A stretch of 63,166 nt of DNA, filler included, from Perkinsus chesapeaki ATCC PRA-425 (lineage: Eukaryota; Protista; Perkinsozoa): the NCBI GenBank assembly GCA_013115145.1. It is 5 parts of 5 records of this genome, joined end to end, with 100 filler letters (N's around TTAATTAATTAA, not from the genome) between each part and the next. Parts side by side here need not be neighbours in the genome. Positions count along the whole stretch, not along the records: positions 56,549 to 57,611 come from JAAPAO010002233.1; 4 more parts are not named here. The stretch is one strand, 5' to 3'. The number at the start of each line of letters is the position of its first letter. The stretch's first letter is position 1. A model generated the notes under the pieces. That model made no database searches and was not told the origin of the DNA. It saw nothing but the letters and a program-made list of their open reading frames with translations. The position numbers and the translations under genes are program-made. Shown in pieces: positions 9,087 to 57,611 of this stretch.

Positions 9087-9325
9087 GGGTGAAAAAGTTC
9101 GGAAAATCCTATCAAAAACGACTAATTCTCCAATTCATATAAGGTGATCCACTCTCTCATTGCCACCAGAGACTTCCAAGGGTAGCCGAAAACAACACAA
9201 AGTAGCACTAGTAGACTAGCGAAGCAACTAGCGCACTGGTATAGAGACGGATGAACACAACCCTGACCCATCGGCGCGAATAAATATAGCGCGCGCCCAA
9301 GTGATCGATTATTTTGCCATCTAAA

Positions 9326-10198
9326 ATGGATCTTCTCGGAGGTGGGCAAGAGCAAGCGCAGTTGACGTCGACTCAGCGGGAGATGATGGCGACTGTCAAG
9401 TCGACCATGGCTAAGGCTCATGATACTGATGAAGTCTCAGGTTAGAAATTTATAATGGTTTTATTAGCCACAACAGGAGGGATAATATGCCGTGATAAAG
9501 TGGTGTTCAGCTCGAACAGCGGAGATAGTACAAAGTCAGGGGGAACAGATAGATCGGATTAATGAGAATAGTCAACAGGTATCAGTGGAAAGCAGCGGGT
9601 TGTCGAAATTGTTAATGGCAGATAGAATCTAACCTTGACACTTCATCCTGGTTGTTGAAAGGCCTGTCATCTTGGGGTGGTCGAATGCGTAATGCTTGGA
9701 CTGGTCAACCTAAGAAGGATCTTCCCAAGCCTCCTAACAGCACTAGCACCTCAAGCAGTAGTGAACGTACACCAAGTCGGGATGTAGCAAGCTCCAAGGT
9801 ATCCAAGGAGCCTTTTATTAGTCAGTCATACCGTATCTTCAGCCAACGGCCTCGAAAACTAGTGTACCCCCCTCCCATAGCGATGCGAATCAAGGCACAG
9901 CTTCTGGAGCTCAGCAGCAGCAACAGCAGCAGCAGAAGTCGCAGTTTGACTCTGACTTGGACAAGCATCTGGACGGTCTCAGTAATATACTCGGCGGCAT
10001 TCATGCCAGGTAGTACCGGGGCTCGAGGCAGGCTGCTGCTGCTGGAGGAGGAGGAAGAACATATCTTTCAGAACCGTCGAAATGAATAGGGAGATCAATC
10101 GTCAGAATCAAACCCTAGATGAAGTCCATACCAGGACGGACAGGTCTGCCCAGCGTATAGAGGAGCAACGGGCACAGATGAGAGATATGCTTCGATAA
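9326..10198 (+). CDS. SNAP-25/SNAP-29-like Qbc SNARE, multi-exon
   Basis: Spliced reading gives two SNARE helices: TAEIVQSQGEQIDRINENSQQIESNLDTSSWLLKGL and DLDKHLDGLSNILGGIH...EINRQNQTLDEVHTRTDRSAQRIEEQ, separated by a S/Q-rich linker. Confidence 0.75.
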
Positions 10199-10793
10199 AT
10201 ACCCTCTCTGTATATATCCACCGCAATAGTTCCTTACAAGCCTCAATTGTGTTGCGCAGTGTCCCTTCTAAGCACGTCATGTTAGTTTTTGTTATAGATG
10301 TCACCTCCAAAGCCTTGGCAGGTGCCGTCATCTTCAGGATCTACCGTGGCCACTATTACCCCGGAGGTTGCGCAGGAGATCCCCGAGGCTCATGACGTAG
10401 ACACTGCCGCGCATGCAGCGGTGCCAGCAGTGGGATGTAATAATACTTGCTATAAGAGAGTTATAGGATCTCTTGAGCAATTTTGGGCTCTCAGTGAGCT
10501 TGAGTGAGTTTATCAAAATGAGACCAAGTACGGGTGCCATCCAAAGGCTTTAGGAAAAGCAGTTCCCCGCTTGAAATCCACTGTGAACTGAATAGGATAG
10601 CGCCGGGAGATAGGATGGTCCAGAATTATCCATTAATTGGATCCCAACTACATCCATAGATTCTTTAAATGCATTATCCACTATTAGTAATCCTAGAAGG
10701 GATTCTACTGTCCATCCAAACCGAGGGACTAGAACTGTTGAGAATGCTCTAAAGCAAAACGGCCGCTTTCACGAGGTTCTGCAACTCCCCTCT

Positions 10794-11787
10794 ATGTTGC
10801 TGATCGACCTTTGTGGTTTACTCCTATACGCCCTGCAACAACCAGTAGCAGGGTCTGTGGCCTCTCCGCTGTTAACAGAATCACAAATTTTTCAGTCCTT
10901 GTTTTCGGGATCACTCCATGGTTTGTCCAAGGCCGGTGCTGATGTGTTCTGACATCCTGCTGTTCCATTTCAGCCTCCTCTACCGTTCCTTCTTCCAATC
11001 TCTATCCTAGCGCTTATGGCATGTACGGCGGTGGAGGCACTGGATTGTAATACCACCACGTGAATGACGATATTATACCTCGTCAGATACGGTGGCACTG
11101 GTGGACTCTACGGTTCATCAATGTATGGCGGCTACGGAGGTTAGTGTTGCTGTGCGCCCTTCTGGCTAGCTCTCTTGCAGGTGGTCTTTATAGTGGTGGT
11201 GGCTACTACCCTGGTGGCCTCCAAGGCATGCCTGGCCAACAGGACTTGTGGTTCACTCAAACGGCAGAGTCCTTGGGGCGGTTTAATCAGATGCTCGAGA
11301 TGCATACCATGTTCTTGGATCAAATTTATCACCATTGTGGAATGATATACGCCCGCGCCACTGATCTAGTGTCATGGCTTAAGGGGGTAGCAGCGACGCC
11401 TAGGCGATTTCCCAAGCTCAAGAGCATGGTGCTAGGTACTCAATTACGTTAGATCTGGGAAGCTTGAAGAGAAGAATATAGAGCTTGTGTTGGACAGGCT
11501 TGGTCAGCTGCATCGGACGCCTCAGGAGGAACTAGCCGTACGCTCAACCCTTTTTCTCCGACAATCGACTCTACCCGACTTAGGGTATCCGGCGACGAGT
11601 GCGAGTGCTGATGGGCTTTGCGGCGCTGGTCGGCCTTTGGATCGTATGGAAGCGTCATCGCCGTCAAGGTAGAGTGCCTCAGTTTTGCCTCTGTCTAGTA
11701 CGTCCATCGCAGGCAGTACTGCTGGAGTTGGGCTCCAAGCCGCTTGGGACTCCGTTCACCGTCGTAGCTGATACGTCTTCCCTGTGA
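10794..11787 (+). CDS. PEX13: PEX13-like peroxisomal membrane protein (boundaries approximate)
   Basis: YG-rich region (YGMYGGGG...YGGYGGGLYSGGGYYPGG) followed by TAESLGRFNQMLEMHTMFL, resembling the Pex13 'GFAQMLES' helix, then a hydrophobic segment. Confidence 0.55.
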
Positions 11788-12959
11788 ACATTACCCTTCA
11801 CGTTACATTTATTCCAACATTGCTCCCTTATTTTATCATGCCCTCTTTGCAAGTGTGAGTTAAGTCGTTCAATCGGGTGTGTTAGTTCTAGAGAATGCTA
11901 CTAGCTCAGCAGGGCCTCCGAGCGAGCTTCGTCCAGCCAATCAGCCGGCTGCTGGCCCCACTGGCGTGTATGTCGCCAGGTTACGACTCTCTAGGAGGCT
12001 CCTCTGTAGCGGGGGTGTGGCTCTTCGTGGATGTCTAAGTGTGGTGCTGTCAGGGCCGGCGGTACAAGTTTTATATACCCCGACGGAACTGGTGGCCATG
12101 GAAGCAGAAGATAGCTCATAAAAATCAAGCCATTACACGCCGGAAGAAACACATTTGGCCACGCTATAGCGATCCGGACGAGCAGAGGGCCGGCGACGTA
12201 TCTTAGCTCGGAGCGCGGTTCATCTGTGTGGAGCTTCCGTGTAGATACGATCGGATCCTGGGCCGTCGGTTCGGTTCAAAGTGCATGACATGAATTTATC
12301 TCTAAAACGTCTGTGGGTCTATGGTCGACTTTTGAGGGTAAAAATGGGGCAGGGGGTACGCGGGGGGAGCCAGTGGTGGACAGGGGCAGTTGGGAATGGA
12401 GGCACCATACCTCAAGGGCTGACCGAGAGCTATAGGTTAAAGGTTCGTGTAGTGTTGAGCCCCATGAGTAATGTGGTCTCCAGTGGATGGAAAAAGAGGT
12501 TTACCGGCGATAATGAATCCCTTACGAATGCTGAAAAATAATAGTAGATTGATAGGGAATATATCTTTGACAAGCAACGGAAAAGCAACGGAAAATGTGA
12601 AATGTGTTGGTCGGGGGAACATGAGATGGTCTAGTCAACCTGGCCCTCCTCCTAGACTCAAGCAAATACAAGTGGTCAGTCGGTAGATTAAGTCGGGAAA
12701 ATAGCAATACACTCATTTGCTTGATTGACTCCCATCGTTTTAACATAGCTCACTTCTTCGGTAGCTTCCGTTGCAGTAGTGTACACTTTATTGTTCAGAA
12801 GAAGCAGCTTCAAGATGCCATCGACTGGATGGAATCGCTCTGTCGTCCAAGTGCCAAGCCAGTCCGGGATTTGGTAACCATTTAAGCCTGGTCTTATCTA
12901 CCCCTCTCAACTGTGTCAGTTGTATCGGGCACGCACGCGAATGGTGGATCATCACGGTT

Positions 12960-13603
12960 ATGATCCAGCAAGGCTCTATATAGGTGGGCGGCGGTGACCG
13001 CTGGCCCTGGCAGAGGCTGCTTCTGGTCAGCTCGCATCTGGACAGAGCGTGGCCCGAGGGTTATGAGTATCCATCAACAGCGAGCTGGGTACTATTTTAG
13101 GAAGAAGAAGCTGCAGAATATGATGCAAGTGGTGGTGCGGGAGGTAGGCTACTATTTGTCCCCGGGCCTGGGCACGCACGGGCCGGCTGGGCTTAGATGC
13201 CGATGAACGAGTACTTCCATAAAGTATATATAATGAAGGAAGTGCCAAGGTCTGTTACACTGGACATGAGGATGGCATTAAGAGATGGGAGAGCTCCGAA
13301 GTCCTATGAGAGGGAATGGGCACCGTAAAACAGCGGGCAGGAATCCTGAGGGTGCGACGGCAAATGACAGGTACATCACAGCAGAGTCGAGGATATGGCA
13401 CCGACGAGGGATGCAATATGAAGATCAGATGAGACGCTTCGATTACTATCAAGTTAGGAGGTAACAAAGCCTTCAATCCGCAGTGTCGATATGGCTATGG
13501 TAGGGAGTGGATAGATAAGTACGCCAGTAGCTTCCATAGAGACGAACAGGAAGCTCGGGAGGCTCGAGGACTGCCGCCGCTGGCTCCCACTGAGCTGTAT
13601 TGA
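12960..13603 (+). CDS. Hypothetical multi-exon protein
   Basis: Coherent exon chain (MPMNEYFHKVYIMKE...SRIWHRRGMQYEDQMRRFDYYQ...WIDKYASSFHRDEQEAREARGLPPLAPTELY*) with short GT-AG introns; no family recognised; start uncertain. Confidence 0.4.
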
Positions 13604-13697: not shown

Positions 13698-16602
13698 ATG
13701 CCAAAAGGGGGCAATAGTTCATCGAAGGAGACCAACGGCAGCAGCAACAACAACAATGCATCGCAGCAGACCATGGGACATGGAGACCAGTCCTTGGTTG
13801 TCCATGTTGGGAGTTTAGAACTACTCTGTCAGAATCTGCCGAGGCCTAGACTTCTACCTAGTGCCGAACCTGGAAGTAAGAAAGAGGGTCTGTTGGGGGT
13901 CTGTATAGAACATGGACCATTATACAGCGACTTATTACCTTACTTTTATGTTACCTCTTTAACCTTCTATTAACACTACCTTACCTTTTACCTTCTATTA
14001 ACACTACCTTACATTTTACCTTCTACTAACACTACCTTACCTTTTACCTTCTATTAACACTACCTTACCTTTTACCTTCTATTAACACTACCTTACCTTT
14101 TACCTTCTATTAACACTACCTTACATTTTACCTTCTACTAACACTACCTTACCTTTTACCTTCTATTAACACTACCTTACCTTTTACCTTCTATTAACAC
14201 TACCTTACCTTTTACCTTCTATTAACACTACCTTACCTTTTACCTTCTATTAACACTACCTTACCTTTTACCTTCTATTAACACTACCTNNNNNNNNNNN
14301 NNNNNNNNNNNNNNNNNNNNNNNNNNNNNNNNNNNNNNNNNNNNNNNNNNNNNNNNNNNNNNNNNNNNNNNNNNNNNNNNNNNNNNNNACCTTACCTTTT
14401 ACCTTCTATTAACACTACCTTACCTTTTACCTTCTATTAACACTACCTTACCTTTTACCTTATATTAACACTACCTTACCTTTTACCTTATATTAACACT
14501 ACCTTACCGTTTACCCTTGTGAGGAATCCTTGTTTTACTGTTGGAGCTATGAACATGTTAAGCTGTATTATGTATATCAGTTCATCCCTTGGATCATCTC
14601 AGGTCTGGTTGATAGTGTGGCCTCGGCAGCTGCTCAATACTATATGACAGATGATAACATATACCTATCCTTCCAGCCATATACTGCTGCTGCCTCTGAC
14701 CCGAATACAGCCCAGGGCACAACTACTACCAATCAACCTGCTGTGGAGACTGTGGTGAAGACCCTTCCCAAAAATGTGAGACCCACGCCTCGGAAGTGTA
14801 CCGATATTTAACCATACAGATGAAAACGGTCGAGTTCAATTGTGATGTTGCGCTGTCATTGCCAGCCAGCCTCGGAGATGTCCGTCAGTAAGTCCGCTGC
14901 CATATGGACTTGCTATTCATTTCTCCACTTCTTCTTTTAAGGTTCAGAGTTTGCCTCTATCGCCGTGGAATTATCGATAACGAGCTTCTGGCTGATGCCT
15001 TAGTTGAGATACCCATTACCACTGAAGTGTCCGAGTCCAATGTGAGAAGCCTCGTGAGAGCGCATGGAAGACTCTTTCAGATCATTATGGTGTCGAGAAG
15101 CGACGGCACGCCTATGGTCCGCGTGACGCTGTCGATTCAGCTGGTGAGGGCCCACGCTTCCAGTACAGTGGAGTAGTCCCCGGTGTTAGGTCGTCACAGA
15201 GCGGCTTATAATGGTACATTTTGCGGAAGAGTTGAGGAAACTTGTGACTGCACAGACCCTCAGTTCGGGCAAAGATGACAATGGTAGCCCAGCGGAGCGT
15301 TCAAGGGATACAGTGGAGGCCATACAGAGGTGAGGCTTATAGGATACGTACGCATCTACTGCGCGAGCGAAGGGCGTCGAGAATGCAACAAGAAATATTA
15401 GACGTGTTGTCGCTTCGAGCCACCACCGTGAGCATCATTGTCTCAGATACGTGTATGCGTGCAGTGCCATCCGTCACTTATGGCATTTCGTATATGATAT
15501 CCTAACCTGGAAGTCAGGCTACACCAGGACCTGGCTATTCCTCATCGCTATAGTTTACAGTGAATATTTATGGTACCTCCACCACAGCTGCACAACATTA
15601 GTTTGGCCCTCTCAGGTTGGTCTTCTTACTCCTCTGCTGTCATATAGTTCTATCCGCGTCCAGTACATCCGAGTTCACTTCGCCAGATGAGGTCGATGCC
15701 AACCTTGCATTTGTCAAGCAGCAGGCTGATGGTCTATCGTATGAACTCCTTTCTGCCCAAGTCACCACGCCTCCGCACTAGGTACATCAGCGAACTCCTC
15801 GCCACCCGCGTATCCTATCGAGTGGGTATGTTGGTGTGCGCATGCGTGCTGTTTTTAACCCCAAGGCCCCACGTTACAGTCTGTGTTATCATCATCCTTT
15901 GCCGTACCTATTGGGCCCAGGCTCTTTACCAGACGATAAGATGCAGACGCGAGACCAAAAGGCGCAAAGGCTCTATGATGTCAGCGAAGCCTCGGTTCCC
16001 AGAGCCTCGATAGCCTGATTCTCGCAGGTTCACCTCAGCTGCGTCATCTCAGGATTGCGCGCCTGGCAATCGGGCCATCACAGTGGAGGTTTATGAGAAC
16101 CAGCGATGGTGGGTTGGCAAGTGGTCGGATAACCTACTGGCTGTCGAGCGTTACGCTTGGAGCGATGAAGCCGGTAGGAATGGTAACAAAATAACAGTAG
16201 ACTTCTTTTCGACCAGGGACGTCTCGGCGCACCAAAGAGGATGTCCATCTGCCTCCGCCTGTCGGTGATAATATATGGCAATGGTCTTCGCTTTGGCGAG
16301 TAGATGCCCGCCCTGAAACCCATGAGACTGATGCTGATGGTTGGACTTATGCCAGGGACTTCGGTTCAGGTAGGCCACACCATGTGCTTTGGCCTCGAGG
16401 GTGTCCACCCATTTCAGGCCAGTGGTCGGCCACTAGAGGCATGGGGGATTTCGTAAGGCGAAGGCGTTGGACCAGAACGGCCCGCTTGGTAGCTGTCAAC
16501 AGCACGCATAACTCTGAGGGAGACGGCAACGGCAATACGGCTGGGGATGAAGGCGTGAGACAGCGACCGCAGAAGAGTGTTGAGGCAGCACCATTGGAGT
16601 GA
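13698..16602 (+). CDS. Dysferlin (DysF)-domain protein, Pex23/Pex24-like, multi-exon
   Basis: C-terminal VEVYENQRWWVGKW...WQWSSLWRVD...DADGWTYARDF...DFVRRRRWTR is the DysF signature; a hydrophobic region lies upstream. Confidence 0.7.
13936..14516 (+). repeat. 28-bp minisatellite (TAACACTACCTTACCTTTTACCTTCTAT)n, intronic, spans an N gap
   Basis: Head-to-tail units with no spacers; a variant unit carries ACATTTT and TACTAAC. Confidence 0.95.
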
Positions 16603-56548: not shown

Positions 56549-57611
56549 TATACTAATAATATATATAAATATGTATAATCTCTAATCTTATGATATTTAT
56601 TATACTATATATGATATTAAGATATAAATAGATATACATTATTTAATATTATAAATTATACATTATTAATAAATCTAATCTATAAAGTATTAATTATCTA
56701 TTCATTATATATACATCTTATCATACTTAATATCATACATTAATATCAACATATAGTATATATAACCTTAAATTATAGTAAATACAATATATTAATTATA
56801 TAAAGATATTATAAATATTACCATAATCTAATGATTAATCTATATATAAAGATCTATATATATTCTTATCTGATATAAATATCACTATTGGTATATAAAC
56901 TACAGATAATATAATATATAATAATAGCATATAGTATAATATAATATAAAGGTATTAGATATAAATAATTTATAATATACCAATCCTTAGATATAATAAT
57001 ATAATATTGATATAATTACAATAAATATTATATACTATAGATCAATAATATGTATAATAAACTAATAGTTATCTGGTTATATTTAATACTATTATATTTA
57101 TTAAATAGTGTATATTATTCTATAGTATATTATATTTATTGTAATTATATCAATATTATATTATTATATCTAAGGATTGGTATATTATAAATTATTTATA
57201 TCTAATACCTTTATATTATATTATACTATATGCTATTATTATATATTATATTATCTGTAGTTTATATACCAATAGTGATATTTATATCAGATAAGAATAT
57301 ATATAGATCTTTATATATAGATTAATCATTAGATTATGGTAATATTTATAATATCTTTATATAATTAATATATTGTATTTACTATAATTTAAGGTTATAT
57401 ATACTATATGTTGATATTAATGTATGATATTAAGTATGATAAGATGTATATATAATGAATAGATAATTAATACTTTATAGATTAGATTTATTAATAATGT
57501 ATAATTTATAATATTAAATAATGTATATCTATTTATATCTTAATATCATATATAGTATAATAAATATCATAAGATTAGAGATTATACATATTTATATATA
57601 TTATTAGTATA
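56549..57611. repeat. Whole-contig palindrome: 492-bp arms with a 79-nt spacer, ~11% GC
   Basis: 56549-57040 is the reverse complement of 57120-57611 at 491/492 positions (T/T mismatch at 57029/57131). Confidence 0.97.

Follow-up and report, generated by a model that had tools for sequence, protein, structure and literature searches.

The short palindromic contig at positions 56549–57611 of the window (the whole stretch of DNA analysed, 63,166 nt) is, judging by its base sequence, Perkinsus chesapeaki mitochondrial DNA (mtDNA) that has already been published, and we conclude with good confidence that it arose as a fold-back (snap-back) chimera of this mtDNA and does not represent a structure of the mitochondrial genome. 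In all likelihood the palindrome itself is a fold-back artefact of sequencing or assembly, and neither a chromosome end nor a genuine inverted repeat.

The piece is 1063 nt in length and palindromic along its length, with a measured GC content of 12.8% (87% AT), where an earlier note on this DNA had given ~11%. An inverted-repeat search returned a dominant repeat at 56549–57047 and 57113–57611, with 499-nt arms that were 99% complementary and separated by a 65-nt gap, and when the piece was set against its reverse complement, pairing was perfect over 480 nt (56549–57028 with 57132–57611); a perfect inverted repeat of this length rules out chance by a wide margin. The arms abut both ends of the piece exactly, with only N outside, so the description of the whole contig as a palindrome stands, as does that of 492-bp arms with one mismatch, which resolve into 480 perfect pairs, a T/T mismatch and 12 further pairs (492 of 493 nt). 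Inside the 12-bp stem, DNA folding placed a 3-nt bulge, 7–8 A/T pairs and small inner stems in the central fold, in keeping with the 3-nt bulge, eight more pairs and inner stem that had been noticed previously.

On its minus strand, the window from 57611 to 57027 was identical at 585 of 585 bases to positions 12263–12847 of mtDNA molecule 1 of P. chesapeaki (ATCC 50807; Pche_mt_01, 21,282 bp), taken from Supplementary File 4 of Gornik et al. (2022, Mol Biol Evol 39:msac191) and corresponding, going by the order of the data-availability list, to GenBank ON035649. Mitochondrial coordinates (mt) are given throughout as 69874 minus the window coordinate. The arm was located via 8-mers containing G or C, chosen so that in any 10-base GenBank register one or more would lie wholly within a block, while the 585-base identity was established by eye rather than with an aligner, from register-aligned 60-base lines, every line being checked twice; all ten full 60-base lines of the window minus strand agreed with the reference. 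The two also resemble one another in composition (87% AT for the contig, 86.3% AT for the genome). Perkinsus mtDNAs are circular-mapping and 82.2–86.3% AT, with two molecules in P. chesapeaki, for which the published mtDNA was built from PacBio and Illumina reads (PMC9550989). The organellar origin put forward in the earlier note, namely from Perkinsus mitochondria, is therefore borne out by the match to molecule 1.

Searches with the arm 8-mers in forward orientation found one location, near 12.4–12.8 kb of Pche_mt_01, so that comparison with Perkinsus mtDNA placed the arm once, at 12263–12847, as single-copy sequence. In reverse orientation, with all ten block registers covered, the 8-mers revealed no inverted copy of the arm in Pche_mt_01 or Pche_mt_02; a single match at ~7.63 kb was surrounded by unrelated sequence. 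The second arm is thus absent from the published genome, and the suggestion of a mitochondrial inverted repeat fails, since the arm in opposite orientation is missing from both mtDNA molecules. Whereas Pche_mt_01 carries one arm and the apex and then runs into unrelated sequence, the contig mirrors mt 12263–12740 after 12847, and the two diverge at mt 12848 (c-t-a-t-a-t-a-g... in the reference, a-t-t-t-a-t-t-g... in the contig). The reference is unique on both flanks: upstream of 12263 it reads …aaatagatatgg, and past 12847 it continues as unique sequence for 8.4 kb, with further annotated rRNA fragments; the apex site lies mid-molecule, 8.4 kb from the closest end of the Pche_mt_01 record. 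The segment mt 12263–12847 is AT-rich and, apart from one weak LSUF-like call, non-coding, and is situated ~640 bp downstream of cox1 (mt 10190–11622).

Features of the palindromic contig in window coordinates, with the corresponding positions in Pche_mt_01 (mt)
Feature	Position	Strand	Basis or remark
Mitochondrial segment, mt 12263–12847	57027..57611	-	8-mer look-up and line-by-line match, 585/585
Fold-back copy, exact reverse complement of mt 12263–12740 (window 57134–57611)	56549..57026	+	Script reconstruction; orientation absent from published mtDNA
Junction, 2-nt AT microhomology (mt 12846–12847) common to natural sequence and start of fold-back copy	57027..57028		Switch after mt 12845, 12846 or 12847
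Arm mismatch, T/T with 57131	57029		Natural A12845 opposite A12743, flanking natural stem
Natural 12-bp stem, 3′ half in mtDNA orientation	57030..57041		mt 12833–12844; pairs with 57119–57130
Natural imperfect apex, 77 nt	57042..57118		mt 12756–12832; single orientation, that of the reference
Natural 12-bp stem, 5′ half in mtDNA orientation	57119..57130		mt 12744–12755
Weak LSUF-like rRNA-fragment call	57280..57313	+	Published annotation, mt complement 12561..12594, score 25

Reconstruction by script showed that the minus strand of the contig equals mt 12263–12847 followed by the reverse complement of mt 12263–12740, exactly and with 0 differences over 480 nt. The join sits in the two bases of AT microhomology, at the outermost pair of a natural hairpin whose stem (mt 12744–12755 with 12833–12844) is followed by an A/A mismatch and two pairs; past these two pairs the natural sequences diverge and complementarity ceases. 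The mismatch in the arms is inherited from single-copy sequence, with no divergence between two copies of a repeat; like the bulge and the asymmetric apex, it is natural single-copy mtDNA. A missed SMRTbell adapter was considered as the cause of the apex and rejected, since the whole apex is natural mtDNA.

The natural 107-nt hairpin has a folding energy of -12 kcal/mol (z = -2.3), a value equalled by 5 of 200 shuffled sequences, and inverted repeats with stems of 8, 10 and 12 bp were no more frequent in the segment than in shuffled sequence. The possibility of a special, selected hairpin at the apex was rejected on these two grounds, the z-score of -2.3 being only modest and inverted repeats being as common in shuffles. 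The apex hairpin is an ordinary feature of 87%-AT DNA. The earlier note had taken the imperfect apex as a sign of a closed hairpin end, an argument that loses its footing here because the apex consists of natural mtDNA surrounding a 12-bp short inverted repeat of an ordinary kind.

Taken with the absence of a second arm from the published genome, a fold-back artefact is a better fit than either a hairpin end or a mitochondrial inverted repeat. The apex and one arm are collinear with the reference, the second arm is the exact reverse complement of the first, and the strand turns back at a short inverted repeat native to the mtDNA, the junction showing microhomology. The contig shares with known fold-back or inverted chimeric artefacts (PMC10908179, PMC12870357, PMC9455707) both the union of a collinear half with an exact reverse-complement half and the further features of a turn at a natural short inverted repeat, a fold at the midpoint and arms that end together. 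Chimeric reads arising at natural inverted repeats have been documented in sonication and end-repair (PMC10908179), long-read foldback artefacts have been documented with a fold within 10% of the read midpoint as the flag for an artefact (PMC12870357), and whole-contig palindromes in assemblies have been judged to be errors (PMC9455707).

In the mechanism that we propose, a single strand spanning mt 12263 to at least 12847 would fold at the ordinary natural short inverted repeat, its unpaired 3′ tail would be trimmed back to the last paired bases (...AT, mt 12846–12847), and the paired 3′ end would prime synthesis along its own 5′ arm up to the fragment end at 12263. The product would comprise an arm, the natural apex and a perfect mirror arm, and would begin and end at the same genomic coordinate. 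Candidate in-vitro steps are library end-repair or polymerase steps acting on easily melted 87%-AT DNA. Alternatively, a hairpin-ended insert may have been read repeatedly as a long-read molecule: such an insert has a single open end, so that the full insert is palindromic with both ends at one coordinate, and repeated reading of this kind would yield a tiny, clean contig on assembly.

Assembly of the chimera as a separate small contig would probably reflect the enormous depth of the mtDNA. Illumina depth of P. chesapeaki mtDNA reached up to 66,225x, with near-identical copies and no heteroplasmy detected (PMC9550989), so that even chimeras amounting to a fraction of 1% would have coverage in the tens; from whole-genome Canu assemblies, ‘redundant, low G+C contigs’ of partial mtDNA were obtained (Gornik et al. 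2022). From the near-identical mtDNA copies without heteroplasmy, the deep coverage, the redundant contigs and the documented classes of artefact, we infer that the fold-back took place in vitro and not in the cell.

Repair of a break in vivo predicts the same product, and sequence alone therefore cannot separate the two origins. A minor but genuine in-vivo form of the mtDNA, which we regard as unlikely, would have arisen from a break just downstream of mt 12847, followed by resection, folding back of the short inverted repeat and fill-in, the outcome being a hairpin-capped end that is replicated into a palindromic sub-genomic mitochondrial molecule. The natural short inverted repeat, the microhomology and the perfect arms are what the fold-back priming model predicts (PMC7999016), and myzozoan mtDNAs are said to show extensive recombination (PMC9550989). 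In the cases of in-vivo fold-back priming reviewed (a 42-bp inverted repeat on a yeast minichromosome and 79/229-bp inverted repeats in CHO cells; PMC7999016), a natural short inverted repeat with its spacer likewise lies at the centre and the arms are perfect and formed de novo; those cases, however, concern nuclear chromosomes with induced breaks, whereas here the stem is of 12 bp and the molecule is known from the contig alone. Weighing further against such a form, no heteroplasmy but near-identical copies were reported at very high depth (PMC9550989), the arms extend for just 480 nt and share their end coordinate, beyond which the mtDNA goes on, and the hairpin is one among many ordinary short inverted repeats, at a site that is unmarked. 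It is doubtful that the contig stands for a real low-abundance molecule; in that case breaks in the mtDNA would be repaired through short AT-rich inverted repeats that prime fold-back synthesis, giving palindromic or hairpin-capped sub-genomic mtDNAs beside the circular-mapping main genome, a pathway in keeping with the recombination noted above for Myzozoa.

Far less probable, and contradicted by the reference, is a structure of the main mitochondrial genome itself, be it a large inverted repeat or a covalently closed, poxvirus-like hairpin serving as the telomere of a linear mtDNA. The contig does resemble hairpin telomeres, as known from poxvirus termini and some linear mtDNAs and plasmids, in its AT-rich, incompletely paired apex and its long perfect arms, and Gornik et al. 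remark in their introduction on the primarily linear nature of organelle genomes and on the false in-silico circularisation that inverted end-structures may bring about (PMC9550989). The reference built from PacBio and Illumina reads nevertheless crosses the apex and carries 8.4 kb of unique sequence on its far side, with no second arm, which leaves the hairpin telomere of the earlier note without its defining feature, a replicon end: from mt 12848 the molecule simply continues. Unlike hairpin telomeres, the site is internal to the replicon and has no resolvase or telomere-resolution context; in the contig the apex is seen in one orientation only, that of the reference, with no flip/flop form, and the apparent mismatch between the arms is natural flanking sequence. 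A nuclear insertion of mtDNA (NUMT) integrated as an inverted duplication has least of all to commend it and is hardly credible, for although integration sites can give rise to inverted duplications, neither end carries a non-mitochondrial flank, the 585 nt compared match mtDNA at 100%, the arms are perfect, and both ends fall at the same mt coordinate.

On the fold-back chimera as the preferred explanation, the genome most likely lacks such a palindrome, the underlying sequence being part of the published mtDNA molecule 1, and the observation bears mainly on quality control. When a draft eukaryote assembly contains a tiny contig that is palindromic throughout and organellar in composition, a fold-back chimera of very deeply covered mtDNA should be presumed until reads say otherwise, and annotation of the contig as a telomere, inverted repeat or separate replicon should be avoided. 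Were the in-vivo origin true instead, hairpin-capped or palindromic mtDNA intermediates would occur in Perkinsus, which would be relevant to the maintenance of mitochondrial genomes in Myzozoa but would introduce no new principle.

A coding or RNA function of the piece at 56549–57611 was rejected, since it contained no ORF longer than 46 aa, a tRNA search found none and an Rfam search gave zero matches, even at E ≤ 10. A tandem-repeat search of the piece revealed low-complexity AT periodicities only. No record was returned by an exact-product look-up of the 46-aa ORF at the apex and the 31-aa ORF in the arm in public assemblies, and the exact 23-mer just before the junction was absent from JGI metagenome and IMG/VR viral contigs, where Perkinsus is not expected. 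The LSUF-like call in the published annotation looks weak, given its score and the lack of an Rfam match at E ≤ 10; its artefactual mirror copy is found at 56847–56880 on the minus strand. GC skew on the plus strand of the left arm was -0.85 to -0.71 over 56649–56798 (mirror 57349–57498), equivalent to a large excess of G over C on the mtDNA reference strand at ~mt 12376–12525, where G/C bases are few; the skew may represent asymmetry between the mtDNA strands in this region, or may be due to chance with so few G/C bases.

The supplementary record of Pche_mt_01 is labelled ‘linear’ and dated 2016, whereas the paper describes the mtDNA as circular-mapping, and the true topology of both P. chesapeaki mtDNA molecules may be worth a closer look, quite apart from this contig. 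Outside the window, in flanking non-coding mtDNA, small hairpins with G/C-rich clamps and AT-rich loops were observed in Pche_mt_01 at ~9190–9235, 12955–13011, 13306–13338, 15300–15347 and 15497–15535, with clamps such as cccctgc…gcagggg, ggggtg…cacccc and ccccagc…gctgggg; these GC-clamped hairpins look like a family of dispersed palindromic elements, reminiscent of the GC clusters of yeast mitochondria.
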